64,000 nucleotides of DNA from Macrostomum lignano (taxonomy: Eukaryota), in contig NIVC01002470.1 of the NCBI GenBank assembly GCA_002269645.1, forward strand, positions 62,001 to 126,000, given 5' to 3'. A model generated the notes under the pieces. That model was not told where the DNA came from and did not search any database. It saw only the letters and a program-made list of their open reading frames with translations. Position numbers and translations under genes: made by a program. Below, piece by piece: positions 3,911 through 47,534 of this stretch (position 1 is its first letter; the number at the start of each line of letters is the position of its first letter).

Positions 3911-4942
3911 TCAGCCCATCAATGTACAAGCGCTGGTGCACTTTCAAACCAGTGGTGGCCTCGCACGCTAGCCTTGGAGCTGACGGCATCGCTGAAATTC
4001 CAACTGAATTTATTTTGCATTTTTGGCCGGCAGCGGCGCTGCCATAAATTTGGAGCTAAAATTAGAAAATTATGCGAAGCCGCATTTTATTTGACCAAAA
4101 AAGTCGGCAATTCTGGGAAACTTTCGAGAAAAAAGATAAAATTTGCGGACAATTTTTTGAATTGAAGCAGTTTTTACTGAGCAGCCAACTCAACTGTGCC
4201 CGGCACGGACTCGGAGCTTCCCCGGGCCCGAAATTCAAAAGGCCTGCCCTGCGCCTTTGTAAAATCAATAAGGCGCTCAAAGAGTTTGAACCCCGAGTCC
4301 AAGGGTTGAATTTGATGAAGCAAAAGATAATGGGTGGAATTGCTGGTTTTGTTCCTAATTCTGCGGGATGAGGCAAATATTTGCTGAGCTCTCGGCGCAT
4401 TGTTCTCCTCAGCTTCTTTTTCTGTCCGAGTTGCTTGGGGGGGTGGGTGTTGCTTCAAGCGGGCTCTTCATCATCCAGCAAATGTTGGCAACTGAAAGAG
4501 CGAGTGGCTTTCCAGCCTGAATCGCTCTCTCAATTGCGCTTGGCTCCGCGCCGTTACTTTTTTTGAGCAATGGGTAGCGATGACGCTGGGAGGCTGGGCT
4601 GCCAAAGTCATTGTCTGTGTTGTCAAGCCCCAAAGCGCGAACGCAGACCTGCAGCAGCGCGCCCGTGTTTTCGCACAGTTGTGTCTGTCTGCTTTTTTGA
4701 GAACCGCCATCTGCATCTCAATGAGGGCGAGCGTTCGCAGTGGAATTCGGGGCGCGAGTTTCCTGCTCTGCGCATGCGGGATCACGAATTCTCGGTCACT
4801 TTCGATCGATCGGCAGCTCTGGCCCGGTGCGACTCTGCATTGTGCCGAGGGCCTCATCTCTTCAGATCATTGGGAGACCGACTTTTCCCCGGTTCTTGCA
4901 TTGCACTTTTCGGGCATTTTAATCCCTGACCAGGTGTTTTAA

Positions 4943-5575
4943 TTGTCTATCCACCCACCTGCACACTCAGCCACCTGTCTATCCATCCACCTGCACACCC
5001 ACTCACCTGTCTATCCACCCACCTGGACCCCCACTCACCTGTCTATCCACCCACCTGGACCCCCACTCACCTGTCTATCCACCCACCTGGACCCCCACTC
5101 ACCTGTCTATCAACCCACCTGCACACCCACTCACCTGTCTATCCAGCCACCTGCACCCCACTTACCTGTCTATCCACCCACCTGCACCCCCACTTACCTG
5201 TCTATCCATCCACCTGCACCCCCACTCACCTGTCTATCCACCCACCTGCACCCCCACTCACCTGTCTATCCAGCCACCTGCACACTCAGCCACCTGTCTA
5301 TCCACCCACCTGCACACTCAGGTGAGTGGGTGTGCAGGTGGGTGGATAGACAGGTGGCTGAGTGTGCAGGTGGCTGGATAGACAGGTGAGTGGGGGTGCA
5401 GGTGGGTGGATAGACAGGTGAGTGGGGGTGCAGGTGGATGGATAGACAGGTAAGTGGGGGTGCAGGTGGGTGGATAGACAGGTAAGTGGGGTGCAGGTGG
5501 CTGGATAGACAGGTGAGTGGGTGTGCAGGTGGGTGGATAGACAGGTGGCTGTCTATCCACCCACCTGCTCACCGA
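4943..5575. repeat. Second block of the 32-bp satellite family, with an internal inversion at ~5321-5547
   Basis: C-rich units to 5320, then G-rich reverse-complement units, then C-rich again from ~5548. Confidence 0.93.
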
Positions 5576-5840
5576 CTAACCTATTACTAATTAGGAGGAT
5601 CAATTCAATACTCGAGTTGTTTCAGTGCCAAGTTTAGCATATAAAAAAGCAAAAACTGCAAGAGTCTGAAGCAGAAATTTATCTGTGTGCAAATTCGACT
5701 AATGCGAAACCCGCCGAGACGGCAATGCGTGGCCGGGAGCAATCTTTGATTTTAATTAGTACATAATTATTTGCACAAATATTTTGAGTCTGCCAATGAT
5801 CTCAGCCAGGACTGACATGGCCGGTTCGTCCCGAGGAAAT

Positions 5841-6908
5841 TCACTGCCGGGGCACCGGCACGCAGGTGGACTTGCACTCCCCTACCGCGCACATGTAGCT
5901 GGGGCTGCGGTACTGCGCCATGCAGTCCACGTGGTTGAAGCACTGCACCTCGAAGGCCTCGCAGCCGCCGCCTGAGTTGTAGAGAAACCGCTTGGCCCGC
6001 GGGCCCGCCAGCTCGCCGAGGCCTGTGGGAGGGAGTTGCTTTGGCTTGGATTAATCTGTTTTAAAGTGGGTTGCTAGTCTAGCCTGTGGATTAGGGGGAT
6101 TTGTAGAATTGGATTGCTAGTCTAGCAAATATGTGAATTGATAATGTGGATTCTATTTAATTCCATCCGAGTTCAGCTCAAAGCTTCAGTCCGTACGACT
6201 TGGATCTGTCTATCTGGTTCGAACCCCGTCCCAGCCCGAGTTCGAACCCCCAGCCGTTCCAACCCCCCCCCCAGCCCGAGTTCCAACCCCCTCAGCCCGA
6301 GTTCCAACCCCCCAGCCCGAGTTCCAACCCCCCAGCCCGAGTTCCAACCCCCCCAGCCCGAGTTCCAACCCCCCCCAGCCCGAGTTCCAACCCCCAGCCC
6401 GAGTTCCAACCCCCCCCAGCCCGAGTTCCAACCCCCCCCAGCCCGAGTTCCAACCCCCCCCCCAGCCCGAGTTCCAACCCCCCCCCCAGCCCGAGTTCCA
6501 ACCACCCCCCAGCCCGAGTTCCAACCCCCCAGCCCGAGTTCCAACCCCCCCCAGCCCGAGTTCCAACCCCCCCCAGCCCGAGTTCCAACCCCCCAGCCCG
6601 AGTTCCAACCCCCCCAGCCCGAGTTCCAACCCCCCCCAGCCCGAGTTCCAACCCCCCCCAGCCCGAGTTCCAACCCCCCCCAGCCCGAGTTCCAACCACC
6701 CCCCAGCCCGAGTTCCAACCCCCCCCCAGCCCGAGTTCCAACCCCCCCCCCCAGCCCGAGTTCCAACCACCCCCCAGCCCGAGTTCGAACCCCCCCAGCC
6801 CGAGTTCAAACCCGCGGATCTCGCGACGCGAACGGCGCTGGCCGCGCCTTCCTGCTGAGCTGCCAGCAGCAGGATCAGTAGGGCGATGATGGCGTGGAGA
6901 GGCTGCAT
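5841..6908 (-). CDS. Secreted Cys-rich peptide precursor, 92 aa, left copy (exons 6812..6908, 5841..6022)
   Basis: Phase-1 splice (G|GTTTGA...CACAG|GC) gives MQPLHAIIALLILLLAAQQEGAASAVRVARSAGLGELAGPRAKRFLYNSGGGCEAFEVQCFNHVDCMAQYRSPSYMCAVGECKSTCVPVPRQ*. Hydrophobic signal peptide, RAKR site, 6 Cys, GC3-rich codons. Confidence 0.8.
6225..6810. repeat. Intronic ~21-24 bp minisatellite (CCCAGCCCGAGTTCCAACCCC with variable C-run)
   Basis: Direct tandem periodicity. Fills the intron of the peptide gene. Confidence 0.95.
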
Positions 6909-7688
6909 TGCGCTCGTTTGCTTCTTCTGTTGTTGGCTTTAGTGATGTTGCAGATTCTGCGGAGGTCAGAGGTCAGAATGTAGGGTTGGCGGCAACTCGT
7001 GGGATCGAGGCGGAGTCTTCCCAGCAACCGCCAAAAGGCCACAGAGAGTGCTCGTAGAGTTTCCCCAATATTTCCCCAAACCAAGGCCAGCTTTAAAGAC
7101 TTTGGCTCCCAATTGGCCCCAATTTGAATATTTCAGGAGCCGCGCCGCTGGCCCACAAAAATCCCAGTCTGAATTTTTCATGAACTCTGCGGAGCTGCAG
7201 ACCAACTAGTTGTCCCCAGTGGGAATTCAGGGGATAAATAAGTAACGCTGTCCATTTCAAACGCAAACTCTGCAAAGTGCTCGCCCGGCCGGGCAATCAT
7301 CGTCTTACCGAAGTGTCGCCGTTGCCAGGTGGTGCCGAGGTATCCGAGAGAGACTTGCGGGAAGCGTATTCGAGCTGGGAATGGCCGCTGTCGCTTTTAA
7401 CTTGCTGTCAGGAGCCGGCGGGGTGGCTGACTGGGGGGGGGGGGGCAGCCCAGGCCAATGGTGGAGCGGGTACTGCCAACTTTTTCTATTGGATTTTTTG
7501 GTATTGATCAATATGCAAGTCAAGGTGTGAGATGCTAATTAATGCCATGCAGTCCGAGAGCGAGATTCGAACTCCCGATAGGTCCAGACAGGGTTCTGAG
7601 TGAGATCTCAGAGTCAGGCTGAGCAAGGGGCAAGGGCATCATCCAGTGCTCACACACTCTAGAAGTTCTGTTTAACTATAAAACCATT

Positions 7689-7965
7689 GCATAGCCTAGT
7701 GGTTAAGAGCGTCAGACTCACGACTTGAAGGTTCAGGGGTTCGATTCCCGATCCCCACTGGAACAATTTGTGTCCTTGAGCAAGACACTATACTTAACTC
7801 TGCATTGCTTCAGTTCACCCAGCTGTAAATTGGTTACCAGCATTAGCTAAGGTAGCTGAGGGTGTGACCCGCCAGTCCTTGGACTGAACAGCCGTACGCA
7901 GCCTTCAGATGCACCAATTGGGCCCAGTTGGGCAGGTGTAATCAATTATAATAATTATTATTTTT
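7689..7965 (+). mobile_element. tRNA-derived SINE with CORE-like central domain, left copy
   Basis: A box TAGCCTAGTGG and B box GGTTCGATTCC. Then GTCCTTGAGCAAGACACT..TTAACTC..CTTCAGTTCACCCAGCTGTAAATTGG, which resembles the MIR/CORE consensus as recalled. AT-rich tail. Confidence 0.8.
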
Positions 7966-8689
7966 ACACGAAGTATGAGATTCGCTTCACATTCCTTTCT
8001 TGCTACTCGTCAGTAGGCGATGGGAAGCATGTGAATAAGTACATGTAAGCATATCCCGTGTAAGCAAGTTAAATGTAACAAATGAGATCAGAAAATGCGT
8101 GTTATTTTCGGGGCACAACTGAAACTTCGGAGCACAGCACTGACATCTCCCAGCTTCAATTGGCGCCCCATCAAACAGACCCTGCTGGCTCGCCCCTGGT
8201 GCCACGGCAATTTTGCATGTTAATGCTTCTTTGAAGCGCACAGATCTGGATCACCAATGCAGATAACAACAGAAAACTGCGAACAGCACAAGCCAACCGC
8301 TTTTTTACCCAAGAGATGCCTGCCTGCAAGAAGGGAAAAAAACAGAGAACCCAGAATGTCATTATGCTAATCAATTGAAGCTCGCGAGCGGAACTTTTCC
8401 GACCCCAGTTTAGCGTCGGATTACAGAAAATGTAATTTAAATTTCGGATAGAAATTTGATCGATATCGAAATGGCTCGCTCCCAACTCCCCAACAACAGT
8501 GTGATGATTGTTCCAATATCAAATTGGTTTGCTTCATTGCAACTGAGAATTAGCTTTGGCATTCAGTCTAGACGCTTTGCTTTTGCACTGCTAATTTAAA
8601 AGTGCTTTACCTTCCGAGTTTTTGGTGCGACATCAAAGCGTTCTGAAACTTTTCTGATTCTATTCATTCCAGTGAGAGCTGTCAGGTAA

Positions 8690-9745
8690 ATGGGATCTGT
8701 CAGAGTCAGGTAATGGGGTCTGTCAGTATCAGGCAATGGGAACTGTTAGTGTCAGATAATGGGAACTCTCAGTGTCAGGTAATGGGATCTGCTACTGTCA
8801 GAAGGCGGGATCTGTCAGTGTCAGGTAATGGGATCTGTCAGTGTCAGGAGGCGGAATCTGTCAGTGTCAGGAGGCGGGATCTATCAGTGTCAGGAGGCGG
8901 GATATGTCAGTGTCAGAAGACGGGATCTGTCAGTGTCAGGAGGCGGGATCTGTCAGTGTCAGGTAATGGGATCTGCCAGTGTCAGGAGGCGGGATCTATC
9001 AGTGTCAGAAGGCGGGATCTGTCAGTGCCAGGAGGCAGGATCTATCAGTGTCAGGAGGCGGGATCTGTCAGTGTCAGGAGGCGGGAACTGTCAGTGTTAG
9101 GTAATGGGATCTGTAGGTGTCAGGAGGTGGGATCTTTCAGTGTCAGGTAATGGGATCTGTCAGTGTCAGGTAATGGGATCTGTAGGTGTCAGGAGGTGGG
9201 ATCAGTCAGTGTCAGGTGGGATCTGTCAGTGTCAGGAGGCGGGATCTGCCAGTGTCAGGAGGCGGGATCTGTCAGAGTCAAGTAATGGGATCTGTAGGTG
9301 TCAGGAGGTGGGATCAGTCAGTGTCAGGTGGGATCTGTCAGTGTCTGGAGGCGGGATCTATCAGTGTCAGGAGGCGGGATCTGTCAGTGTCAGGAGGCGG
9401 GATCTATCAGTGTCAGGAGGCGGGATCTATCAGTCAGGAGGCGGGATCTGTCAGTGTCAGGAGGCGGGATCTATCAGTGTCAGGAGGCGGGATCTATCAG
9501 TCAGGAGGCGGGATCTGTCAGTGTCAGGAGGCGGGAACTGTCAGTGTTAGGTAATGGGATCTGTCAGTGTCAGGTAATGGGATCTGTCAGTGTCAGGTAA
9601 TGGGATCTGTCAGAGTCAAGTAATGGTATCTGTCAATGTTAGGGAGCGGGATCAGGCAGTGTCAGGAGGTGGGATCAGGCAGTGTCAGGAGGTGGGATCA
9701 GTCAGTGTCAGGAGGCGGGACCTGCCAGTGTCAGGATGCGGGATT
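8690..9745. repeat. ~23-bp minisatellite (GTCAGGAGGCGGGATCTGTCAGT)
   Basis: Direct periodicity. Source of the repetitive SVSGGGICQCQ ORFs. Confidence 0.95.
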
Positions 9746-10664
9746 TATCAGAGTCAGCTCCTTAACAGTCAGTTCAACGGCAGTGAGAGAAGCCCAGATT
9801 CGAAAGCCAAATATTCAATTAGCGTGATAAGCAGATGGCTGGCACACAAAACCAGCAGCAGGCTGTATAATTATCAATGCTCATCCACAAAAGTTTAAGT
9901 TAGCAACAAGAATTCGTCAGAGAAAAAATGTATAATTACAGCACTTCGTATTTTCATAATTTTTTTTCTTTTGCTAAAAAACGGACTCAAGCGACAGGGG
10001 GGGGCGAGTTTAATTAACACAATGAGCAGCCCAGCGCGTGAAGATAAAAAAATCAAAATGATGAAGAACAGATTGCATGGGACTCACATGCAGCATAGCA
10101 ACTGAAAATCTGCAGTCGACGGCACCAAATGAAAATTCAATTGAAGTGGCGAGGCCCTCCCTGAACTGCTCAACTTTACAGAGTTGCACAAACAACTCGC
10201 AATTCATTAGTGTTATTGTTAAGGACTGCGGACTCGCTTATTTGGGATTTTTAAATCCCTTTTTTTCTTACGCAGAGATTGGACACTACTGCAAGTAGGG
10301 AGAGTTGACTAGTACTATATATAATCTATTTAATTAGTAATTTGCCTGCAGGTATAATAAATAAATAATGATGATAAAATAGAAGAAATAATGACATCAA
10401 CAGTTTGCTTTATACAGATTGGAACATTATAGAATTTTAGAACTGCTGTGCTCATGATTATCATTAAACAGGCGGGCAAGGCACTCGCGGGGATCTGTGC
10501 TAGGCTGGGGATTAGCTTTGGTTAGAAGATGCCCAGTGGGATTAAAGCTACGAGCTCGTAAATCAGCATTCTGTTATAATAGTCAGATTTGGCAGGAAAT
10601 ATTCGAATACACAAGCAGACAGCAAGCCTGTTAATTTCAAATAAGAATTAAATAAGTTTTCGTT

Positions 10665-11083
10665 GATGGGCCACTCAGGCATATTTACTTAGTAAAACAG
10701 CTTTCTACTTTCAGTTCAGTAGCAAGCAAGAATACATAAGCTTTTTTATAAAAATAAAGGCAGCTGAAATGACTTTGATAAGTTTAGAAGCCCAAGCTTG
10801 CAGGCGTAAACAGCTTCCTAATTGGTTCAGCGATAATGTACATTAGCCAGTCCACTGAAATGTACATGGCAGCTTTAGGCTGGAATTCCGAGAATGGCAA
10901 TAAAATTGGGGCGGGACGGGGGGCAGTGTGAAAAGGCGCGGTTGGAGTTTAAGCTGGGGATGGAGGGGGGGGGGGGTTAAGAGCCAATTAATGAGCTTTG
11001 GCTTTAAAAATGCTTCAGTTTAACATACTACTGAACTGAAAGTAGCTTACACGCAAATGTGCTGCGTGGCCCATCTAGTTATT
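10665..11083. mobile_element. MITE-like element A (perfect 18-bp inner TIR CTACTTTCAGTTCAGTAG at 10705..10722 / 11028..11045)
   Basis: Inverted termini extend imperfectly outward (GATGGGCCAC..). Interior is homologous to element B. Confidence 0.65.
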
Positions 11084-11290
11084 CTAGTATTTGTGGTGAT
11101 AACACGACTTTTGGATGACTTTTTTGAGGCTCTTACGATTCTGCAATTCACGTGATGCGCTTGTGTCTCAACAGTCGCCTCACCGTCGTATTGCAGTCGT
11201 TTGAGTCACAAGTCACAAGAGTCGCCCCAGAGCCAGTTCTTGTCACGATAAAGTTATCAACGGGCAAAGGCGACCACAGATGCTATTTTT

Positions 11291-11550
11291 AATAACTAGA
11301 CGCGTCACTTAGGCAAATATATGGGCTTTTACTACTTTCAGTTCAGTAGTAAGGAAGAAGGCAGTTGCAGATGGAAATGACATGTTATTAGTGCATCTGT
11401 CATGTACATCCACTTGGCAGCTTGGGGGAGGGGGTAAGATGACGAAAAAACCTGTGCCGCCCTAAAATACATTAAAATGCTTCTATTTAACTTACTACTG
11501 AACTGAAAGTAGTTTAAACGCAAATGTGCTGAGTGGCCCATCTAGTTATT
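11291..11550. mobile_element. MITE-like element B, same family (TIR core 11332..11349 / 11495..11512)
   Basis: Same 18-bp TIR; outer termini AATAACTAGA...TCTAGTTATT. Shared internal motifs (ATGTACAT, GGCAGCTT, AAAATGCTTC). Confidence 0.65.
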
Positions 11551-11586
11551 TTAGTCACTGTACTCTAATGTAGTGTTAATGAGAGC

Positions 11587-14043
11587 TCACAGCCGGTTGC
11601 CAGGAGCCTGCCTGCCCTGCTGCTGCTGGCTGTACTGTGTCAGCACCTGCTGTAGCGCCTGTACAGACAGCTCGTGCACCGTCTGCGGCCGGCACTGCTC
11701 CTCCAGCCAGGTGATTACGCAGCCGGACAGCTCGGCGAAGCTGCCAGCCGACGTGGACCGGTCGAAGCCGGCGAACAGCTGGTCCATCACGGACTGGAAC
11801 ACGCTGAACTTCACCTGCTCGGGCAGCGGCTGCGACTGCGGCGAAGAGGCGGCCGCAGCCCCGCCAGATGCTCCGGCACTGCTCACAAAGTGCTCATAGT
11901 TCATCTTCATTATCTTCAGCGCCATCACCTGCAGTTGGTAGACAGGTTTAGTTATTAGCTATGATTTATGAGCAACTTGTATTGTATATCACTAAGCAGA
12001 ATCCCTAGATCAAGGCTGGAATGGCACTCATCAGTACTAGAATTGCACTTATCAAGGCTGGAATGGCACTCATCAGTACTAGAATGGCACTCATCAAGGC
12101 TGGAATGGCATTCATCAGTACTAGAATGGCACTCATCAAGGCTGGAATGGCACTCATCAATACTAGAATGGCACTCATCAAGTCTGGAATGGCACTCATC
12201 TAGGCTGGAATGGCACTCATCAGTACTAGAATTGCACTTATCAAGGCTGGAATGGCACTCATCAGTACTAGAATGGCACTCATCAAGGCTGGAATGGCAT
12301 TCATCAGTACTAGAATGGCACTCATCAAGGCTGGAATGGCACTCATCAATACTAGAATGGCACTCATCAAGTCTGGAATGGCACTCATCTAGGCTGGAAT
12401 GGCACTCATCAGTACTAGAATTGCACTTATCAAGGCTGGAATGGCACTCATCAGTACTAGAATGGCACTCATCAAGGCTGGAATGGCATTCATCAGTACT
12501 AGAATGGCACTCATCAAGGCTGGAATGGCACTCATCAATACTAGAATGGCACTCATCAAGGCTGGAATGGCACTCATCAATACTAGAATGGCACTCATCA
12601 ATACTAGAATGGCACTCATCAATACTAGAATGGCACTTATCAAGGCTGGAATGGCACTCATCAGTACTAGAATTGCACTTATCAAGGCTGGAATGGCACT
12701 CATCAGTACTAGAATGGCACTCATCAAGGCTGGAATGGCATTCATCAGTACTAGAATGGCACTCATCAAGGCTGGAATGGCACTCATCAATACTAGAATG
12801 GCACTCATCAAGTCTGGAATGGCACTCATCTAGGCTGGAATGGCACTCATCAATACTAGAATGGCACTCAACAATACTAGAATGGCACTCACCAATACTA
12901 GAATGGCACTTATCAAGGCTGGAATGGCACTCATCAATACTAGAATGGCACTCAACAATACTAGAATGGCACTCATCAATACTAGAATGGCACTCATCAA
13001 TACTAGAATGGCACTTATCAAGGCTGGAATGGCACTCATCAGTACTAGAATGGCACTCATCAGTACTAGAATGGCACTCATCAAGGCTGGAATGGCACTC
13101 ATCAATACTAGAATGGCACTCATCAAGGCTGGAATGGCACTCATCAATACTAGAATGGCACTCATGAAGTCTGGAATGGCACTCATCTAGGCTGGAATGG
13201 CACTCATCAATACTAGAATGGCACTCAACAATACTAGAATGGCACTCATCAATACTAGAATGGCACTCATCAAGGCTGGAATGGCACTCATCAATACTAG
13301 AATGGCACTCATCAATACTAGAATGGCACTCATCAATACTAGAATGGCACTCATCAATACTAGAATGGCACTCATCAATACTAGAATGGCACTCATCAAT
13401 ACTAGAATGGCACTCATCAAGTCTGGAATGGCACTCATCAAGGCTGGAATGGCACTCATCAAAGCTGGAATGGCACTCATCAAGGCTGGAATGGCACTCA
13501 TCAAGGCTGGAATGGCACTCATCAAGGCTAGCACCCTCGCACCTCTTTGTGCAGTTTGTCCAGCTCGCGCTCCTGCAACTCCTTCTGCTTGGCCAGATGC
13601 TCCATGTGCCTGATTGACCTCTGCAAGATGGACGCTTTGCTCAGCGACTTGGCGTTAGTTTCTCCGGATCCGCCACCAGCAGCGGCGGCGCCGCCGGCAG
13701 CCGAGGCGCTGGGCGCGGCGCCAACCAGCTCGTACAGCTTGTCATAGCCCTGCTTGATGGCGTCCCTGCGCTTCTGCTCGGCCTGCGTGTGCAGCTCGCG
13801 CCTCCGGTCCTTCACCAGCGCGGCTGAATCGTGCGAGAAGTCGCCACCACCACCGGCGCCGCCGCTGTTGCTGCTGTCCAGCAGCATGTCCTCCCGGTCG
13901 GAGAGGCTCGGGGACCGATGGCCGCTGCGGCCGCCGCCAGCACTGCCGCCGGAGGCCTGCAGAGCGCGGGATCTGCTGCTGTGCTGACCGCTGACCTGGC
14001 GCTGCATCAAGTTGTTAAAGAGGCTGATTCTTTTGCTCTGCAT
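11587..14043 (-). CDS. MLX: Max-like protein X (bHLH-ZIP), left copy (exons 13543..14043, 11587..11928; start Met tentative)
   Basis: HTQAEQKRRDAIKQGYDKL basic helix, LSKASILQ, KE|VMALKIMKMNYE, and QVKFSVFQ..FAELSGCVITWLEEQCRPQT, matching the Mlx C-terminal domain. GAG|GTGCGA donor, TGCAG acceptor, phase 0. Confidence 0.92.
12008..13530. repeat. 21-bp minisatellite in the Mlx intron with 189-bp higher-order repeat
   Basis: Two alternating monomers (ATGGCACTCATCAAGGCTGGA / ATGGCACTCATCAGTACTAGA). Identical 189-bp blocks at 12011, 12200 and 12389. Confidence 0.95.
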
Positions 14044-17212: not shown

Positions 17213-17214
17213 AC

Positions 17215-17268
<54 letters not shown>

Positions 17269-19317: not shown

Positions 19318-19477
19318 ATTTATCTTCTGAATTCCGATTTGTATTCTACATGTTACCATCAACATTTGCTGTTGAAAGTTGTAAGAATTTATTTTCAAGG
19401 TCAGGAATACTTGGCTACGCCACTGGACAGACCTTCGGTTTACCTTTCACAAAGGGAGGTTTTTTCCTGCGATTTCG

Positions 19478-24305: not shown

Positions 24306-24356
<51 letters not shown>

Positions 24357-25003
24357 GTATTAATAATAATAAAAGTAAATATGTAGATTAATATATAATC
24401 TTTGGATTTCAAAGGATTATATATATGTATTGGTTTGGTCAAAGTTAAGAATATTTATTAAGGTTAATTGTATAAGGAATTTAAAAAATATAAAATCAGA
24501 AAAAATATAGGTAAGTTTCATTTCCTCATGAAATTGTAGCATATTTAGAACTAAAATCAAACATCACCACAATCTATTTGGGTGGCATGGATTCACTAAC
24601 AAAAAGTCATTATCATTAAAAATGGGTGAATGCAAATTGAAAGATAATGAGTTATGGGTAGGGAAAACATGTTAACTTAATTCCGAGACATGGATGAACC
24701 AGAATTCAGCACTCAAATAGGCTAGGAAGGCGGTGGCGTACGCAGCCCCCCCCCCATTGCCTAGGGAGGTGACTGATGGAGGTCTTGCCAGAGGCGACTA
24801 GCCAGATAGAACCCTAAAAATGTCCTTTATTGTTGCAACTTGTCGGTGCAGATGGACGATACTCCCCCTGGGCTGTTGGCGCCCCTCTTCAATGGAAAAT
24901 TCTGCGTACGCCACTGCAGGAAGGGAAAAAAATCATATCATAATTTCAAAATAAAGAATGTACCTTTGAAAAGATAGTCATATTCGTCATCCTTTGAAGT
25001 CAT
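19703..25003 (-). CDS. RAB11: Rab11-like GTPase, complete copy (exons 24964..25003, 23417..23591, 20662..20957, 19703..19841) with a 1-nt frameshift in exon 4
   Basis: All G motifs present ([31 protein letters not shown]) plus [23 protein letters not shown]. Splice phases are consistent. The C-terminal SKKSCCS* lies in a shifted frame. Confidence 0.92.
19845..20510. repeat. Rab11 intron 3 minisatellites: ~31-bp GGGGTCAACTGGGGTCATTTGGTGGTCATTT (19845-20330) and 21-bp GATTCTAATGACTTTGGGGAG-like (20345-20510)
   Basis: Direct periodicity. Confidence 0.93.
21025..21600. repeat. 21-bp minisatellite (GGATCTGGATTCTTGGATTTG) in Rab11 intron 2
   Basis: Direct periodicity. Confidence 0.95.
22257..23228. 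repeat. 20-bp minisatellite, right copy
   Basis: Reverse complement of 18345-19317. Confidence 0.95.
23841..24360 (+). mobile_element. RTE-clade LINE fragment, right copy
   Basis: Mirror of 17213-17731; the (TAA)n tail is one unit shorter. Confidence 0.78.
24731..24916. mobile_element. hAT-type MITE, right copy
   Basis: Mirror of 16653-16840. Confidence 0.8.
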
Positions 25004-27527: not shown

Positions 27528-29917
27528 ATGCAGAGCAAAAGAATCAGCCTCTTTAACAACTTGATGCAGCGCCAGGTCAGCGGTCAGCACAGCAGCAGAT
27601 CCCGCGCTCTGCAGGCCTCCGGCGGCAGTGCTGGCGGCGGCCGCAGCGGCCATCGGTCCCCGAGCCTCTCCGACCGGGAGGACATGCTGCTGGACAGCAG
27701 CAACAGCGGCGGCGCCGGTGGTGGTGGCGACTTCTCGCACGATTCAGCCGCGCTGGTGAAGGACCGGAGGCGCGAGCTGCACACGCAGGCCGAGCAGAAG
27801 CGCAGGGACGCCATCAAGCAGGGCTATGACAAGCTGTACGAGCTGGTTGGCGCCGCGCCCAGCGCCTCGGCTGCCGGCGGCGCCGCCGCTGCTGGTGGCG
27901 GATCCGGAGAAACTAACGCCAAGTCGCTGAGCAAAGCGTCCATCTTGCAGAGGTCAATCAGGCACATGGAGCATCTGGCCAAGCAGAAGGAGTTGCAGGA
28001 GCGCGAGCTGGACAAACTGCACAAAGAGGTGCGAGGGTGCTAGCCTTGATGAGTGCCATTCCAGCCTTGATGAGTGCCATTCCAGCCTTGATGAGTGCCA
28101 TTCCAGCTTTGATGAGTGCCATTCCAGCCTTGATGAGTGCCATTCCAGACTTGATGAGTGCCATTCTAGTATTGATGAGTGCCATTCTAGTATTGATGAG
28201 TGCCATTCTAGTATTGATGAGTGCCATTCTAGTATTGATGAGTGCCATTCTAGTATTGATGAGTGCCATTCTAGTATTGATGAGTGCCATTCCAGCCTTG
28301 ATGAGTGCCATTCTAGTATTGATGAGTGCCATTCTAGTATTGTTGAGTGCCATTCTAGTATTGATGAGTGCCATTCCAGCCTAGATGAGTGCCATTCCAG
28401 ACTTCATGAGTGCCATTCTAGTATTGATGAGTGCCATTCCAGCCTTGATGAGTGCCATTCTAGTACTGATGAGTGCCATTCTAGTACTGATGAGTGCCAT
28501 TCCAGCCTTGATAAGTGCCATTCTAGTATTGATGAGTGCCATTCTAGTATTGATGAGTGCCATTCCAGCCTTGATGATTGCCATTCTAGTACTGATGAGT
28601 GCCATTCCAGCCTTGATAAGTGCCATTCTAGTATGATGAGTGCCATTCTAGTTGATAGTGCCATTCTAGTACTGATGAGTGCCATTCCAGCCTAGATGAG
28701 TGCCATTCCAGACTTGATGAGTGCCATTCTAGTATTGATGAGTGCCATTCCAGCCTTGATGAGTGCCATTCTAGTACTGATGAATGCCATTCCAGCCTTG
28801 ATGAGTGCCATTCTAGTACTGATGAGTGCCATTCCAGCCTTGATAAGTGCAATTCTAGTACTGATGAGTGCCATTCCAGCCTTGATAAGTGCCATTCTAG
28901 TATTGATGAGTGCCATTCTAGTATTGATGAGTGCCATTCTAGTATTGATGAGTGCCATTCCAGCCTTGATGAGTGCCATTCTAGTATTGATGAGTGCCAT
29001 TCCAGCCTTGATGAGTGCCATTCTAGTACTGATGAATGCCATTCCAGCCTTGATGAGTGCCATTCCAGCCTTGATAAGTGCAATTCTAGTACTGATGAGT
29101 GCCATTCCAGCCTAGATGAGTGCCATTCCAGACTTGATGAGTGCCATTCTAGTATTGATGAGTGCCATTCCAGCCTTGATGAGTGCCATTCTAGTACTGA
29201 TGAATGCCATTCCAGCCTTGATGAGTGCCATTCTAGTACTGATGAGTGCCATTCCAGCCTTGATAAGTGCAATTCTAGTACTGATGAGTGCCATTCCAGC
29301 CTAGATGAGTGCCATTCCAGACTTGATGAGTGCCATTCTAGTATTGATGAGTGCCATTCCAGCCTTGATGAGTGCCATTCTAGTACTGATGAATGCCATT
29401 CCAGCCTTGATGAGTGCCATTCTAGTACTGATGAGTGCCATTCCAGCCTTGATAAGTGCAATTCTAGTACTGATGAGTGCCATTCCAGCCTTGATCTAGG
29501 GATTCTGCTTAGTGATATACAATACAAGTTGCTCATAAATCATAGCTAATAACTAAACCTGTCTACCAACTGCAGGTGATGGCGCTGAAGATAATGAAGA
29601 TGAACTATGAGCACTTTGTGAGCAGTGCCGGAGCATCTGGCGGGGCTGCGGCCGCCTCTTCGCCGCAGTCGCAGCCGCTGCCCGAGCAGGTGAAGTTCAG
29701 CGTGTTCCAGTCCGTGATGGACCAGCTGTTCGCCGGCTTCGACCGGTCCACGTCGGCTGGCAGCTTCGCCGAGCTGTCCGGCTGCGTAATCACCTGGCTG
29801 GAGGAGCAGTGCCGGCCGCAGACGGTGCACGAGCTGTCTGTACAGGCGCTACAGCAGGTGCTGACACAGTACAGCCAGCAGCAGCAGGGCAGGCAGGCTC
29901 CTGGCAACCGGCTGTGA
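27528..29917 (+). CDS. MLX: Max-like protein X, right copy (exons 27528..28028, 29576..29917; start Met tentative)
   Basis: Translation identical to the left copy. Confidence 0.92.
28041..29495. repeat. 21-bp Mlx intron minisatellite, right copy
   Basis: Mirror of 12008-13530 with some unit gains and losses. Confidence 0.95.
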
Positions 29918-29953
29918 GCTCTCATTAACACTACATTAGAGTACAGTGACTAA

Positions 29954-30213
29954 AATAACTAGATGGGCCACTCAGCACATTTGCGTTTAAACTACTTTCA
30001 GTTCAGTAGTAAGTTAAATAGAAGCATTTTAATGTATTTTAGGGCGGCACAGGTTTTTTCGTCATCTTACCCCCCTCCCCCCAAGCTGCCAAGTGGATGT
30101 ACATGACAGATGCACTAATAACATGTCATTTCCATCTGCAACTGCCTTCTTCCTTACTACTGAACTGAAAGTAGTAAAAGCCCATATATTTGCCTAAGTG
30201 ACGCGTCTAGTTA
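29954..30213. mobile_element. MITE-like element B, right copy
   Basis: TIR cores at 29992..30009 and 30157..30174. Confidence 0.65.
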
Positions 30214-30422
30214 TTAAAAATAGCATCTGTGGTCGCCTTTGCCCGTTGATAACTTTATCGTGACAAGAACTGGCTCTGGGGCGACTCTTGTGACTTGTGA
30301 CTCAAACGACTGCAATACGACGGTGAGGCGACTGTTGAGACACAAGCGCATCACGTGAATTGCAGAATCGTAAGAGCCTCAAAAAAGTCATCCAAAAGTC
30401 GTGTTATCACCACAAATACTAG

Positions 30423-30838
30423 AATAACTAGATGGGCCACGCAGCACATTTGCGTGTAAGCTACTTTCAGTTCAGTAGTATGTTAAACTGAAGCATTTTT
30501 AAAGCCAAAGCTCATTAATTGGCTCTTAACCCCCCTCCATCCCCAGCTTAAACCCTCCAACCGCGCCTTTCCACACTGCCCCCCGTCCCGCCCCAATTTT
30601 ATTGCCATTCTCGGAATTCCAGCCTAAAGCTGCCATGTACATTTCAGTGGACTGGCTAATGTACATTATTGCCGAACCAATTAGCAAGCTGTTTACGCCT
30701 GCAAGCTTGGGCTTCTAAACTTATCAAAGTCATTTCAGCTGCCTTTCTTTTTATAAAATAGCTTATGCATTCTTCTTTGCTACTGAACTGAAAGTAGAAA
30801 GCTGTTTTACTAAGTAAATATGCCTGAGTGGCCCATCA
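30423..30838. mobile_element. MITE-like element A, right copy
   Basis: TIR cores at 30461..30478 and 30780..30797. Confidence 0.65.
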
Positions 30839-31754
30839 ACGAAAAACTTATTAATTCTTATTTGAAATTAACAGGCTTGCTGTCTGCTTGTGCATTCGAA
30901 TATTTCCTGCCAAATCTGACAATGCTGATTTACGAGCTCGTAGCTTCAATCCCACTGGGCATCTTCTAACCAAAGCTAATCCCCGACTAGCACAGATCCC
31001 CGCGAGTGCCTTGCCCGCCTGTTTAATGATAATCATGTGCACAGCAGTTCTAAAATTCTATAATGATCCAATCTGTATATAGCAAACTGTTGATGTCATT
31101 TTTTCTTCTATTTTATCATCATTATTTATTTATTATACCTGCATGCAAATTACTAATTAAATAGATAATATATAGTACTAGTCAACTCTCCCTACTTGCA
31201 GTAGTGTCCAATCTCTGCGTAAGAAAAAAAAGGTTTTAAAAATCCCAAAATAAGCGAGTCCGCAGTCCTTAATAATAACATTAATGAATTGCGAGTTTTT
31301 TGTGCAACTCTGTAAAGTTGAGCAGTCCAGGGAGGGCCTCGCCACTTCAATTGAATTTTCATTTGGTGCCGTCGACTGCAGATTTTCAGTTGCTATGCTG
31401 CATGTAAGTCCCATGCAATCTGTTCTTCATCATTTTGATTTTTTCTATCTTCACGCGCTGGGCTGCTCATTGTGTTAAATAAACTCGCCCCCCTGTCGCT
31501 TGAGTCCGTTTTTTAGCAAAAGGAAAAGAAATTATGAAAATACGAAGTGCTGTAATTATATATTTTTTCTCTCACGAATTCTTGTTGCTAACTTAAACTT
31601 TTGTGGATGAGCATTGATAATTATACAGCCTGCTGCTGGTTTTGTGTGCCAGCCATCTGCTTATCACGCTAATTGAATATTTGGCTTTCGAATCTGGGCT
31701 TCTCTCACTGCCGTTGAACTGACTGTTAAGGAGCTGACTCTGATAAATCCCGCA

Positions 31755-32730
31755 TCCTGACACTGGCAGGTCCCGCCTCCTGACACTGACTGATCCCACC
31801 TCCTGACACTGCCTGATCCCACCTCCTGACACTGCCTGATCCCGCTCCCTAACATTGACAGATACCATTACTTGACTCTGACAGATCCCATTACCTGACA
31901 CTGACAGATCCCATTACCTGACACTGACAGATCCCATTACCTAACACTGACAGTTCCCGCCTCCTGACACTGACAGATCCCGCCTCCTGACTGATAGATC
32001 CCGCCTCCTGACACTGATAGATCCCGCCTCCTGACACTGACAGATCCCGCCTCCTGACACTGATAGATCCCGCCTCCAGACACTGACAGATTCCACCTGA
32101 CACTGACTGATCCCACCTCCTGACACCTACAGATCCCATTACTTGACTCTGACAGATCCCGCCTCCTGACACTGGCAGATCCCGCCTCCTGACACTGACA
32201 GATCCCACCTGACACTGACTGATCCCACCTCCTGACACCTACAGATCCCATTACCTGACACTGACAGATCCCATTACCTGACACTGAAAGATCCCACCTC
32301 CTGACACCTACAGATCCCATTACCTAACACTGACAGTTCCCGCCTCCTGACACTGACAGATCCCGCCTCCTGACACTGATAGATCCTGCCTCCTGGCACT
32401 GACAGATCCCGCCTTCTGACACTGATAGATCCCGCCTCCTGACACTGGCAGATCCCATTACCTGACACTGACAGATCCCGCCTCCTGACACTGACAGATC
32501 CCGTCTTCTGACACTGACATATCCCGCCTCCTGACACTGATAGATCCCGCCTCCTGACACTGACAGATTCCGCCTCCTGACACTGACAGATCCCATTACC
32601 TGACACTGACAGATCCGCCTTCTGACAGTAGCAGATCCCATTACCTGACACTGAGAGTTCCCATTATCTGACACTAACAGTTCCCATTGCCTGATACTGA
32701 CAGACCCCATTACCTGACTCTGACAGATCC
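31755..32730. repeat. ~23-bp minisatellite, right copy
   Basis: Mirror of 8690-9745, shorter. Confidence 0.95.
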
Positions 32731-33459
32731 CATTTACCTGACAGCTCTCACTGGAATGAATAGAATCAGAAAAGTTTCAGAACGCTTTGATGTCGCACCA
32801 AAAACTCGGAAGGTAAAGCACTTTTAAATTAGCAGTGCAAAAGCAAAGCGTCTAGACTGAATGCCAAAGCTAATTCTCAGTTGCAATGAAGCAAACCAAT
32901 TTGATGTTGGAACAATCATCACACTGTTGTTGGGGAGTTGGGAGCGAGCCATTTCGATATCGATCAAATTTCTATCCGAAATTTAAATTACATTTTCTGT
33001 AATCCGACGCTAAACTGGGGTCGGAAAAGTTCCGCTCGCGAGCTTCAATTGATTAGCATAATGACATTCTGGGTTCTCTGTTTTTTTCCCTTCTTGCAGG
33101 CAGGCATCTCTTGGGTAAAAAAGCGGTTGGCTTGTGCTGTTCGCAGTTTTCTGTTGTTATCTGCATTGGTGATCCAGATCTGTGCGCTTCAAAGAAGCAT
33201 TAACATGCAAAATTGCCGTGGCACCAGGGGCGAGCCAGCAGGGTCTGTTTGATGGGGCGCCAATTGAAGCTGGGAGATGTCAGTGCTGTGCTCCGAAGTT
33301 TCAGTTGTGCCCCGAAAATAACACGCATTTTCTGATCTCATTTGTTACATTTAACTTGCTTACACGGGATATGCTTACATGTACTTATTCACATGCTTCC
33401 CATCGCCTACTGACGAGTAGCAAGAAAGGAATGTGAAGCGAATCTCATACTTCGTGTAA

Positions 33460-33733
33460 AAATAATAATAATTATAATTGATTACACCTGCCCAACTGGG
33501 CCCAATTGGTGCATCTGAAGGCTGCGTACGGCTGTTCAGTCCAAGGACTGGCGGGTCACACCCTCAGCTACCTTAGCTAATGCTGGTAACCAATTTACAG
33601 CTGGGTGAACTGAAGCAATGCAGAGTTAAGTATAGTGTCTTGCTCAAGGACACAAATTGTTCCAGTGGGGATCGGGAATCGAACCCTGAACCTTCAAGTC
33701 GTGAGTCTGACGCTCTTAACCACTAGGCTATGC
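33460..33733 (-). mobile_element. tRNA-derived CORE-like SINE, right copy
   Basis: Mirror of 7689-7965. Confidence 0.8.
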
Positions 33734-34506
33734 AATGGTTTTATAGTTAAACAGAACTTCTAGAGTGTGTGAGCACTGGATGATGCCCTTGCCCCTTGCT
33801 CAGCCTGACTCTGAGATCTCACTCAGAACCCTGTCTGGACCTATCGGGAGTTCGAATCTCGCTCTCGGACTGCATGGCATTAATTAGCATCTCACACCTT
33901 GACTTGCATATTGATCAATACCAAAAAATCCAATAGAAAAAGTTGGCAGTACCCGCTCCACCATTGGCCTGGGCTGACCCCCCCCCAGTCAGCCACCCCG
34001 CCGGCTCCTGACAGCAAGTTAAAAGCGACAGCGGCCATTCCCAGCTCGAATACGCTTCCCGCAAGTCTCTCTCGGATACCTCGGCACCACCTGGCAACGG
34101 CGACACTTCGGTAAGACGATGATTGCCTGGGCGAGCACTTTGCAGAGTTTGCGTTTGAAATGGACAGCGTTAGTTATTTATCCCCTGAATTCCCACTGGG
34201 GACAACTAGTTGGTCTGCAGCTCCGCAGAGTTCATGAAAAATTCAGACTGGGATTTTTGTGGGCCAGCGGCGCGGCTCCTGAAATATTCAAATTGGGGCC
34301 AATTGGGAGCCAAAGTCTTTAAAGCTGGCCTTGGTTTGGGGAAATATTGGGGAAACTCTACGAGCACTCTCTGTGGCCTTTTGGCGGTTGCTGGGAAGAC
34401 TCCGCCTCGATCCCACGAGTTGCCGCCAACCCTACATTCTGACCTCTGACCTCCGCAGAATCTGCAACATCACTAAAGCCAACAACAGAAGAAGCAAACG
34501 AGCGCA

Positions 34507-35336
34507 ATGCAGCCTCTCCACGCCATCATCGCCCTACTGATCCTGCTGCTGGCAGCTCAGCAGGAAGGCGCGGCCAGCGCCGTTCGCGTCGCGAGATCCG
34601 CGGGTTTGAACTCGGGCTGGGGGGGTTCGAACTCGGGCTGGGGGGTGGTTGGAACTCGGGCTGGGGGGGGGGTTGGAACTCGGCTGGGGGGGGGGTTGGA
34701 ACTCGGGCTGGGGGGGGTTGGAACTCGGGCTGGGGGGGGGGTTGGAACTCGGGCTGGGGGGTTGGAACTCGGGCTGGGGTGGGTTGGAACTCGGGCTGGG
34801 GGGGTTGGAACTCGGGCTGGGGGGGTTGGAACTAGGGCTGGGGGGTTGGAACTCGGGCTGGGGGGTTGGAACTCGGGCTGAGGGGGTTGGAACTCGGGCT
34901 GGGGGGGGGAGGGTTGGAACGGCTGGGGGGTTCGAACTCGGGCTGGGACGGGGTTCGAACCAGATAGACAGATCCAAGTCGTACGGACTGAAGCTTTGAG
35001 CTGAACTCGGATGGAATTAAATAGAATCCACATTATCAATTCACATATTTGCTAGACTAGCAATCCAATTCTACAAATCCCCCTAATCCACAGGCTAGAC
35101 TAGCAACCCACTTTAAAACAGATTAATCCAAGCCAAAGCAACTCCCTCCCACAGGCCTCGGCGAGCTGGCGGGCCCGCGGGCCAAGCGGTTTCTCTACAA
35201 CTCAGGCGGCGGCTGCGAGGCCTTCGAGGTGCAGTGCTTCAACCACGTGGACTGCATGGCGCAGTACCGCAGCCCCAGCTACATGTGCGCGGTAGGGGAG
35301 TGCAAGTCCACCTGCGTGCCGGTGCCCCGGCAGTGA
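34507..35336 (+). CDS. Secreted Cys-rich peptide precursor, right copy (exons 34507..34603, 35155..35336)
   Basis: Same 92-aa product as the left copy; the intron minisatellite is shorter. Confidence 0.8.
34605..34960. repeat. Intronic G-rich minisatellite of the peptide gene, right copy
   Basis: GTTGGAACTCGGGCTGGGGGG units starting at the donor. Confidence 0.95.
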
Positions 35337-35606
35337 ATTTCCTCGGGACGAACCGGCCATGTCAGTCCTGGCTGAGATCATTGGCAGACTCAAAATATTT
35401 GTGCAAATAATTATGTACTAATTAAAATCAAAGATTGCTCCCGCGATCCACGGCCACGCATTGCCGTCTCGGCGAATTTCGCATTAGTCGAATTTGCACA
35501 CAGATAAATTGCTGCTTAAGACTCTTGCAGTTTTTGCTTTTTTATAAGCTAAACTTGGCACTGAAACAACTCGAGTATTGAATTGATCCTCCTAATTAGT
35601 AATAGG

Positions 35607-36181
35607 TTAGTGGGTGAGCAGGTGGCTGGATAGACAGGTGAGTGGGTGAGCAGGTGGGTGGATAGACAGGTGGCTGGGTGTGTAGGTGGGTGGATAGACA
35701 GGTGAGTGGGTGAGCAGGTGGGTGGATAGACAGGTGAGTGGGTGAGCAGGTGGGTGGATAGACAGGTGACTGGGTGTGCAGGTGGGTGGATGGACAGGTG
35801 ACTGGGTGTGCAGGTGGCTGGATAGACAGGTGACTGGGTGTGCAGGTGGGTGGATAGACAGGTGACTGGGTGTGCAGGTGGGTGGATAGACAGGTGACTG
35901 GGTGTGCAGGTGGCTGGATAGACAGGTGAGTGGGGGTGCAGGTGGGTGGATGGACAGGTGACTGGGTGTGCAGGTGGCTGGATAGACAGGTGACTGGGTG
36001 TGCAGGTGGCTGGATAGACAGGTGAGTGGGTGTGCAGGTGGGTGGATAGACAGGTGAGTGGGGGTCCAGGTGGGTGGATAGACAGGTGAGTGGGGGTCCA
36101 GGTGGGTGGATAGACAGGTGAGTGGGTGTGCAGGTGGATGGATAGACAGGTGGCTGAGTGTGCAGGTGGGTGGATAGACAA
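35607..36181. repeat. 32-bp satellite block, single orientation
   Basis: Mirror of 4943-5575 but without the internal inversion. Confidence 0.93.
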
Positions 36182-37217
36182 TTAAAACACCTGGTCAGGG
36201 ATTAAAATGCCCGAAAAGTGCAATGCAAGAACCGGGGAAAAGTCGGTCTCCCAGTGATCTGAAGAGATGAGGCCCTCGGCACAATGCAGAGTCGCACCGG
36301 GCCAGAGCTGCCGATCGATCGAAAGTGACCGAGAAATCGTGATCCCGCATGCGCAGAGCAGGAAACTCGCGCCCCGAATTCCACTGCGAACGCTCGCCCT
36401 CATTGAGATGCAGATGGCGGTTCTCAAAAAAGCAGACAGACACAACTGTGCGAAAACACGGGCGCTGCTGCAGGTCTGCGTTCGCGCTTTGGGGCTTGAC
36501 AACACAGACAATGACTTTGGCAGCCCAGCCTCCCAGCGTCATCGCTACCCATTGCTCAAAAAAAGTAACGGCGCGGAGCCAAGCGCAATTGAGAGAGCGA
36601 TTCAGGCTGGAAAGCCACTCGCTCTTTCAGTTGCCAACATTTGCTGGATGATGAAGAGCCCGCTTGAAGCAACACCCACCCCCCCCCCCCCAAGCAACTC
36701 GGACAGAAAAAGAAGCTGAGAAGAACAATGCGCCGAGAGCTCAGCAAATATTTGCCTCATCCCGCAGAATTAGGAACAAAACCAGCAATTCCACCCATTA
36801 TCTTTTGCTTCATCAAATTCAACCCTTGGACTCGGGGTTCAAACTCTTTGAGCGCCTTATTGATTTTACAAAGGCGCAGGGCAGGCCTTTTGAATTTCGG
36901 GCCCGGGGAAGCTCCGAGTCCGTGCCGGGCACAGTTGAGTTGGCTGCTCAGTAAAACTGCTTCAATTCAAAAACTATCCGCAAATTTTATCTTTTTTCTC
37001 TCGAAAGTTTCCCAGAATTGCCGACTTTTTTGGTCAAATAAAAAGCGGCTTCGCATAATTTTCTAATTTTAGCTCCAAATTTATGGCAGCGCCGCTGCCG
37101 GCCAAAGATGCAAAATAAATTCAGTTGGAATTTCAGCGATGCCGTCAGCTCCAAGGCTGGCGTGCGAGGCCACGGCTAGTTTGAAAGTGCACCAGCGCTT
37201 GTACATTGATGGGCTGA

Positions 37218-37480
37218 GCAGGTGGCTGAGTGTTCAGGTGGGTGGATGGACAGGTGGCTGAGTGTTTAGGTGGGTGGATAGACAGGTGGTTGGGTGTGTA
37301 GGTGGGTGGATAGACAGGTGGCTGGGTGTGTAGGTGGGTGGATAGACAGGTGGCTGAGTGTGCAGGTGGGTGGATAGACAGGTGGCTGAGTGTTCAGGTG
37401 GGTGGAAGGACAGGTGGCTGAGTGTTCAGGTGGGTGGATGGACAGGTGGCTGAGTGTTCAGGTGGGTGGATAGACAGGTA
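37218..37480. repeat. 32-bp satellite block at the outer end of the right arm
   Basis: GGTGGCTGAGTGTTCAGGTGGGTGGATAGACA units. Confidence 0.92.

Positions 37481-47477: not shown

Positions 47478-47534
<57 letters not shown>

Follow-up and report, generated by a model that had tools for sequence, protein, structure and literature searches.

The apparent palindrome on scaffold NIVC01002470.1 of Macrostomum lignano DV1 (assembly Mlig_3_7) is very probably an assembly artefact rather than a biological inverted duplication: two allelic contigs, representing the variants L1 and L2 of the large chromosome MLI1, would have been falsely joined tail-to-tail. That the join is false is the most likely reading of the sequence, and it is likewise most likely that the two contigs, here called A and B, are the L1 and L2 variants of MLI1, as judged from divergence values only. 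The locus was placed on this scaffold by its best Rab11 match, which is 100% identical (P0002, M. lignano). In what follows, the window is the whole stretch of 64,000 nucleotides that was analysed; window position w corresponds to position w+62000 of the record, and negative positions lie to the left of the window. Contig A extends up to window position 19477 and contig B starts at 19624. The coordinates of all features are listed in Table 1.

Table 1. Features of the locus on scaffold NIVC01002470.1, in window positions (RC, reverse complement).
Feature	Position	Strand	Remarks
32-bp satellite, distal in contig A	1..3877	.	TRF: 121 copies, 97%
Left arm	3633..19477	+	last part of Canu contig A; RC alignment to 22095-37479
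Peptide gene, A copy	5841..6908	-	exons ~6811-6908 and 5841-6022; splice reconstruction
Mlx-like bHLH-Zip gene, A copy	11587..14004	-	267 aa; called gene with PF00010
42-bp minisatellite in Mlx-like intron, A copy	12009-13529
Rab11 fragment, A copy	16567..18156	+	exon 1 (16567-16605) and exon 2 (~17980-18156) only; tblastn
Contig A tip	19280..19477	+	alignment vs B, L002, L003
Scaffolding gap, 146 N	19478..19623	.	sole N run in the window; only join of contigs A and B
"Spacer", start of contig B	19624..22094	-	13 bp of repeat-block match, Rab11 3'UTR, exons 4 and 3, rest of intron 2
Rab11 exon 4, B copy	~19703-19841	-	within spacer
Rab11 gene, B copy	19744..25003	-	annotated "partial"; 203 aa, P0002 = PAA57580.1, BOX15_Mlig000656g3
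Rab11 exon 3, B copy	~20662-20957	-	within spacer
Right arm	22095..37479	-	interior of contig B; complete Rab11 5' part, Mlx, peptide gene
Mlx-like gene, B copy	27567..29917	+	267 aa; called gene
Peptide gene, B copy	34507..35336	+	92 aa; protein identical to A copy
B flank	37480..49470	-	14-bp array, 254-aa gene (39537-40301), FAN1 (about 41746-49100); mirrored at -14334..-1903

A first-pass annotation of the window had described reverse-complementary arms around a gapped centre, with distal substitutions between the arms and with a satellite as the outer end of the repeat. All of this was corroborated except for the last point. Over 3911-19477, the left arm aligns to the right arm with 14,696 matches, 265 mismatches, and 768 gap columns (98.23% identity over aligned bases). 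The inner 6.3 kb of the left arm (13195-19477) show no substitutions and a few small indels against their partner, and a distal sample (9991-11504) shows 32 substitutions per 1,494 bp. Both arms carry the gene for a 92-aa Cys-rich peptide, the 267-aa bHLH (Mlx-like) gene, and exons 1-2 of Rab11, in agreement with the duplicated gene content noted before. The distal substitutions also bear out the earlier view of the arms as two separate copies of DNA, not one molecule read twice. Reading of both strands of a single molecule, e.g., after a missed hairpin adapter in a PacBio read, would suit the substitution-free inner arms, but we rejected it, its probability being practically negligible: there are 265 substitutions and array-length differences distally, the centre of symmetry (about 20786) lies away from the gap within an asymmetric spacer of 2.5 kb, and A and B are separate contigs that were linked by the scaffolder.

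The Mlx-like protein matches the Pfam HLH domain (E=7.6e-10) and shows 44% identity to the bHLHZip and C-terminal domain of human MLX; no sequence relative of it was found in PDB. The 92-aa peptide (P0125 = PAA57578.1/PAA57582.1, two sites on NIVC01002470.1) is a predicted secreted Cys-rich precursor with a signal peptide, a KR site, and 6 Cys. Pfam assigned no domain to this peptide or to the 254-aa protein encoded in the B flank. Rab11 also occurs in an intact 217-aa form (P0121) on three other scaffolds.

Mlig_3_7 was built by Canu from PacBio reads (130x), followed by Pilon and then by SSPACE with Illumina/454 paired libraries, and blocks that are redundant at ≥95% identity make up 180 Mb of it. 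The gap in the centre of the repeat, reported before, is confirmed as a single run of N. The inner end of the left arm turned out to be a contig end and not a repeat boundary: its last base directly abuts the gap. The junction between arm and centre is represented in the record by the scaffolder's gap only, and the long-read assembler left both contigs unjoined. Relative to contig B and two further copies of the locus (L002 and L003), all three in mutual agreement here, the tip of contig A shows 7 single-base homopolymer indels and is free of substitutions. No novel junction sequence was found in this tip, which matches Rab11 intron 2 of the other copies to its final base. The first ~250 bp of contig B contain 3 indels and the Rab11 frame is broken there; the first 13 bp match a 9.3-kb repeat block of L002 and not the sequence of L003/L004. 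L002, a third contig located on scaffold NIVC01001670.1, is colinear with both tips and extends past each of them, continuing in Rab11 intron 2 beyond the A tip and in the 9.3-kb repeat block beyond the B tip.

Contig A has the gene order FAN1, 255-aa gene, peptide gene, Mlx, and Rab11 exons 1-2, and it stops in Rab11 intron 2. As the tip is colinear with this intron to the last base, the A copy of Rab11 is evidently shortened by the contig end and not by mutation. The sequence between the arms, in turn, is clearly the remainder, with exons 3-4, of the Rab11 gene on the right-hand side.

At the distal side, an outer boundary within the 32-bp satellite had been proposed, and the alignable block does end there; however, homology restarts beyond. 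The left satellite reaches ~1.3 kb beyond the window (to about -1300) and is followed by a 14-bp array and a gene that are mirrored in contig B. Its counterpart in contig B occupies 37219-37479, so that the satellite measures about 5 kb on the left (about -1300 to 3877) versus 0.26 kb on the right. Past the satellite, where the mirror test was run via the 254/255-aa gene cluster, window positions -4159..-1903 are the reverse complement of 40129..37890, and mirror homology continues to at least window -14334, the reverse complement of 49470, which is the limit of the fetched DNA. The mirrored outer genes to the left of the window are the 255-aa gene and FAN1, reaching at least 14 kb beyond the window edge. 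The B flank, previously treated as single-copy, thus also has a mirror copy, and the inverted homology comprises at least 2 x ~31 kb instead of ~33 kb in total. No hit at E≤1e-30 was obtained in a homology search with the concatenated translation of the FAN1 exons, probably because this alanine-rich query saturated the candidate list. No outer breakpoint at which arm homology ends was found up to window -14334 and 49470. Satellite-mediated breakpoints were rejected, as homology runs on beyond the satellite and only its length differs between the copies; the proposal of a real inverted duplication generated in this way has thereby lost its breakpoint argument.

Outside arrays, the substitution divergence between A and B rises from 0% in the inner part to 0.3-2.1% in the distal arms and 1.4-2.4% beyond them. 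Over at least 30 kb, the range is 0-2.4%, and gene content and gene order agree. For the MLI1 variants L1 and L2, a divergence of 1.39% (k-mers) and 1.91% (paralogous blocks) has been published (Zadesenets et al., 2023, PMC10733133). Per block, 0-2 substitutions separate L002 from A, and likewise from B (3 in about 4.8 kb). In the inner region, L002 matches each arm as closely as the arms match each other, and an arm-to-arm identity above that to the other copies was not seen. At 31 sites that differ between A and B, the distal end of L002 alternates finely between the A and the B allele and has no private allele, as is expected of a consensus from mixed A-type and B-type reads. The clade of L003 and L004 shows a divergence of about 4-5% between Mlx and Rab11, in the intergenic region, and is devoid of the 9.3-kb block common to B and L002. 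It would fit the copy of the S subgenome (small chromosome), which would complete the expected three copies. A pair with 1.4-2.4% divergence in the outer region is thus accompanied by a more diverged third copy, as in an L1/L2 pair. A false join of contigs from S and L (MLI1), or of contigs reflecting residual heterozygosity of the worm pool, appears very unlikely to us. The values between A and B also overlap the S-L range of 1.58-2.41%, and many S/L chimeric scaffolds were detected in the 2023 study (PMC10733133), but L003/L004 is the better candidate for S, given its 4-5% intergenic divergence and the missing 9.3-kb block.

We therefore favour the alternative already raised in the first-pass annotation, haplotype or homeolog contigs placed tail-to-tail: the left arm ends at the gap, the tips are error-rich and lie inside a third contig, and the outer divergence equals that published for L1/L2. 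Contigs A and B would then be two assembled versions of one locus (FAN1 - 254/255-aa gene - peptide - Mlx - Rab11). L1 and L2 would be identical around Mlx-Rab11 and diverge outward, which would create a fork in the long-read assembly. One collapsed contig, L002, would take the identical part together with the downstream DNA. The variant-specific contigs A and B would enter the identical part by a read-length (6.3 and 8.7 kb) and then fade out as low-coverage, error-rich tips. SSPACE would have linked both tips over an estimated 146-bp gap, resulting in opposite orientation and an apparent palindrome, with the extra 2.5 kb of Rab11 reached by contig B and not by A appearing as a spacer.

The orientation of the join argues against an artefact, because, with A and B allelic, proper inward-facing pairs from one molecule would fall on one and the same strand of both contigs and should not support an A(+)-B(+) join. 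A repeat-based explanation is not at hand: no same-strand repeats between the end of contig A and the start of contig B that might have misled the scaffolder were found, and the only repeat from this search, a 229-bp inverted satellite block (5319-5551), is too distant from the tips. As a speculation, a problem with the orientation convention of the 454 8-kb and 20-kb libraries, which are given in the supplement of the assembly paper, would produce exactly the A(+)-B(+) join; SSPACE orientation settings were not found in that supplement.

We consider it unlikely that one MLI1 chromosome carries a real inverted duplication. In that case, DNA broken immediately downstream of Rab11, 13 bp inside the repeat block, would have been repaired by joining to Rab11 intron 2, through fold-back or between homologs. 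The product would be a 2.6-kb loop flanked by two long inverted arms, and the gap would conceal the new junction. Against this possibility we count that the inverted joining of homologous segments at chromosome scale would tend to give dicentric or acentric products. Besides, Canu did not assemble across the supposed junction despite 130x PacBio coverage, with both contigs ending as error-rich tips, and neither tip holds junction sequence, both being contained in L002. The outer arm divergence of 1.4-2.4% resembles that of L1 versus L2 and not that of a recent duplication, and no outer breakpoint was seen out to window -14334 and 49470. Moreover, this reading would make L002 a third haplotype, although L002 lacks private alleles at the sites that distinguish A from B. 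SSPACE, on the other hand, had enough paired links for this orientation with a small positive gap, an orientation that is not predicted by simple allelic mis-mapping of inward-facing pairs, and intrachromosomal MLI1 rearrangements have been proposed (PMC10733133). The specific case of one MLI1 variant that bears both the L1-type and the L2-type FAN1-Mlx-Rab11 segment as a giant inverted duplication is quite unlikely. If true, the fusion of Rab11 intron 2 to the DNA directly downstream of Rab11 would physically record the inter-/intrachromosomal rearrangements by which, as has been proposed, the MLI1 copies stay heterozygous and isolated genetically.

With a false join of allelic contigs as the preferred reading, the sequence data most likely show one locus in its L1 and L2 versions, together with a third, collapsed contig. 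Caution is advised to users of Mlig_3_7, who would find on this scaffold two genes each for Mlx and the peptide as well as an extra, truncated Rab11, and might take the arrangement for a palindrome. This would affect copy-number estimates and the design of knock-outs and transgenes in this model flatworm, as well as any search of polyploid or heterozygous assemblies for palindromes or gene gains. The same check may be suitable for other SSPACE joins of Mlig_3_7.

Real large palindromes with short spacers are found as ampliconic palindromes of sex chromosomes and as fold-back inverted duplications. The locus resembles them in its long inverted arms, its unique centre of 2.6 kb, the very high identity near the centre, and its mirrored genes. 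Unlike in these, the record shows only a scaffolder's gap where sequence should run on into the centre, neither an outer boundary (out to window -14334 and 49470) nor junction sequence was found, the identity between the arms is no higher than that to a copy on another scaffold, and the outer divergence is that of homologous chromosome variants.

A closer parallel is the false "heterotype" duplication, in which both haplotypes are kept and placed on one scaffold; one of its listed hallmarks is that a gap separates the copies there (Ko et al., 2022, PMC9516828; purge_dups, PMC7203741). Here, the copies differ at variant level, they are separated by a gap at contig ends, and the tips are contained in L002, which continues differently. 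As in heterotype duplications, near-identical copies at haplotype-level difference flank a gap on one scaffold of a highly heterozygous genome, and gene models are duplicated or truncated (a second Mlx and peptide gene, half a Rab11). Unlike in these, the copies are inverted and not tandem, and the heterozygosity would be the fixed L1/L2 difference of an inbred line, not ordinary allelic variation.

The three-copy blocks of S, L1, and L2 described for Mlig_3_7, where class L is recognized by a doubling of depth/k-mers between DV1_8 and DV1_10 (Zadesenets et al., 2023, PMC10733133), are matched by two close copies plus the more diverged L003/L004, with divergence in the published range. Unlike in those blocks, both L copies share one scaffold. 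That study measured S/L chimerism only and considered L1/L2 chimerism impossible to assess there (PMC10733133); the locus described here would be a concrete example of the latter.

Self-comparison of the window recovered the long inverted repeat claimed by the first-pass annotation: positions 3633-19477 are the reverse complement of 22095-37479 (record positions on the 171,314 bp scaffold NIVC01002470.1 are window positions plus 62000). Across 3911-19477, the arms align with 14,696 matches, 265 mismatches, and 768 gap columns. The differences are unevenly distributed. The left copy (contig A, ending at 19477) and the right copy (contig B, from 19624) show no substitutions over 13195-19477, and the distal substitutions that had been noted occur beyond it in patches of 0.3-2.1%; every minisatellite of the arms differs in length between A and B. 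Distal substitutions and a gap lying away from the centre rule out that the palindrome is a hairpin or missed-adapter artefact. The inverted repeat is present in the record but most likely absent from the worm.

Features of the arms and of the other assembly copies
Feature	Coordinates	Remark
92-aa secreted Cys-rich peptide gene	window 5841-6908 and 34507-35336	one per arm; same protein P0125, two sites on the scaffold
267-aa Mlx-like bHLH-Zip gene		one in each arm; Pfam HLH match
Rab11 exons 1-2		one set in each arm
"Spacer"	window 19624-22094	remainder of right-hand Rab11: rest of intron 2, exon 3, exon 4, 3'UTR
Near-identical Rab11 tract	window 19637-23230; L003 ~11850-15453; L004 ~3070-6671	
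9.3-kb non-coding block	L002 12754-22028	directly downstream of Rab11
L003/L004 overlap	L003 15282-20309; L004 6500-11524	

The "spacer with a gap" placed between the arms stands only as to the gap, the single N run of the window (146 N, 19478-19623); the remainder belongs to the Rab11 gene of B. The left Rab11 is a half gene because the sequence of A stops there. The Rab11 protein built from the window exons matches P0002 ("BOX15_Mlig000656g3, partial", Macrostomum lignano) at 100% identity; the locus of P0002 is this same scaffold, in assembly GCA_002269645.1 (Mlig_3_7). The 267-aa protein shows 44% identity to what we take to be the human MLX sequence. The 92-aa precursor consists of a signal peptide, a cleavage site (...RAKR), and a 48-aa peptide whose cysteines are spaced C-x6-C-x5-C-x10-C-x4-C-x3-C. 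Among 5.8 billion proteins, no relatives were found outside Macrostomum, and a Pfam search gave no match; its relatives carry UniRef labels of ShKT- or Kunitz-domain proteins. To the right of FAN1 lie exons (51077-63415, minus strand) of a four-domain voltage-gated cation channel-like gene. Tandem arrays cover 43% of the window (TRF score at least 200; units of 4-63 bp, mostly 12-63 bp). Nearly all introns and intergenic regions bear an array of their own kind, with lengths unequal among all copies.

DNA to the left of the window (negative coordinates) was fetched via the peptide gene and the adjacent 254/255-aa gene. Mirror homology restarts past the 32-bp satellite, with -4159 to -1903 being the reverse complement of 40129-37890, and mirrored blocks reach -14334, matching 49470. 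FAN1 (830 vs. 842 aa) and the 255/254-aa gene are mirrored as well, each pointing one way on the left and the other way on the right. On each side, the inverted homology covers no less than about 31 kb; in its outer part, A and B diverge by 1.4-2.4% outside tandem arrays. The proposal that the outer boundary falls inside the satellite, with satellite-mediated breakpoints, thus has to be abandoned: the array is merely longer on the left (about 5 kb, from about -1300 to 3877) than on the right (0.26 kb, 37219-37479), and homology and gene order persist beyond it. Within the left copy, 229 bp of the 32-bp satellite (5319-5551) are inverted relative to their neighbours, forming a local palindrome centred near 5317; the matching array of the right copy (35604-36180) has a single orientation. 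Either an assembly error or a polymorphic small inversion accounts for this block.

There is no continuity between the two sides of the gap, and its flanks look like low-coverage contig tips. Base 19477, the last of the left arm, directly precedes the gap. Compared to the right arm, to L002 (the Rab11-bearing contig at the end of NIVC01001670.1), and to L003 (the end of NIVC01003866.1), the final 200 bp of A have seven single-base homopolymer indels and no substitutions; the tip tracks canonical Rab11 intron 2 to its last base, from where the other copies run on. The first 250 bp of B show three indels against three other copies. Rab11 of B has deletions of 3 bp, 1 bp, and 1 bp within 19700-19800 relative to three other copies, which destroy its C-terminal prenylation motif (...KKSCCS), and it is annotated as "partial" because tip indels break the reading frame. 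We read these deletions as most likely errors of the consensus near the end of a contig and not as marks of a pseudogene. The first 13 bp of B match the start of the 9.3-kb repeated, satellite-bearing block downstream of Rab11 in L002, and differ from the post-Rab11 sequence of L003 and L004 (the start of NIVC01003725.1). L002 contains both gap flanks, colinear through and past each tip. For Mlig_3_7, PacBio reads were assembled with Canu, the contigs were polished with Pilon, and SSPACE linked them through Illumina and 454 paired libraries (assembly paper). Since Canu contigs were joined by SSPACE and both tips are contained in L002, the 146-N gap is a scaffolder's join.

An intact 217-aa Rab11 (P0121) is encoded on three further scaffolds, and copies of the locus fall into two groups, the arms with L002, and L003 with L004. 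L002 differs from the arms by 0-2 substitutions per block in the inner region (3 in about 4.8 kb) and distally by 0.5% and 0.9%. The L003/L004 clade lacks the 9.3-kb block and has diverged by about 4-5% between Mlx and Rab11; its two members are overlapping scaffold ends, 0.2-0.3% apart. At the 31 sites within 30075-31573 where A and B differ, L002 has the A allele 11 times and the B allele 20 times, finely alternating and with no private allele. From its sequence, L002 looks like A-type and B-type reads merged into one consensus, unlike a third haplotype.

The 9.3-kb block, of which contig B has 13 bp before it breaks, is composed of a directly duplicated unit of ~3.2-4.1 kb, repeats of 90 bp and 133 bp, and 2.9 kb of a 52-bp satellite. 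L003 and L004 overlap by about 10 kb in the same orientation at about 99.5-99.8% identity; they are scaffold ends of the presumed S copy that were left redundant and unmerged. In all five assembly copies, L003 and L004 included, exons 3 and 4 of Rab11 and the 3' part of intron 2 are near-identical, with 0-2 substitutions over ~1.1 kb outside arrays, compared to 4-5% in the adjoining Mlx-Rab11 intergenic region; gene conversion between subgenomes may have produced this tract.

Three subgenomes make up the DV1 genome: S, represented by homozygous small chromosomes, and L1 and L2, two non-identical versions of the large chromosome MLI1 (PMC10733133). SNP divergence is 1.39% (k-mers) or 1.91% (paralogous blocks) between L1 and L2, and 1.58% or 2.41%, respectively, between L and S (PMC10733133). 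Mlig_3_7 is mostly three-copy, with variants often collapsed or expanded, L1/L2 above all; S/L chimeric scaffolds make up 36% of assembly length, L1/L2 chimerism being beyond that study's assessment (PMC10733133). By their own account, the assembly authors found redundancy amounting to 180 Mb, in blocks that are at least 95% identical (assembly paper).

An assembly fork is the simplest account of the contig ends, the mirror, the divergence, and the L002 mosaic. L1 and L2 would be equal in sequence around Mlx-Rab11 and collapsed into one contig, L002, spanning that part and downstream DNA. The variant-specific contigs A and B would each pass their last private variant by the length of a read, 6.3 kb for A and 8.7 kb for B, and end as thin tips, which SSPACE would then have joined; the L003/L004 clade would be the S copy. 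We thus infer that A and B are L1/L2 variants and that their join is false. Against this speaks that an inward-facing pair from one molecule hits the same strand of allelic, inverted A and B, leaving the join unsupported; direct repeats able to mislead the scaffolder were not found near the A and B tips. Libraries of 454 paired ends of 8 and 20 kb were used in Mlig_3_7. Such pairs are natively same-strand, and we conjecture that, with mismatched orientation conventions, allelic contigs would be joined tail to tail in just this way.

A real join would physically exemplify the MLI1 rearrangements that have been suggested to keep L1 and L2 heterozygous. We leave this a slight chance because the scaffolder's choice of orientation does not fit an allelic pair. 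However, 130x PacBio data gave no assembly through the join, no junction sequence is present in either tip, the divergence of the arms across at least 30 kb resembles that of homologous chromosome variants, an outer boundary is absent, and L002, which lies on another scaffold, has the inner identity too. The palindrome is thus best classed as not a real feature and most likely as a false duplication by scaffolding. Next to read depth and read pairs, a gap between copies on one scaffold, as seen here, is a published criterion for false heterotype duplication (PMC9516828).
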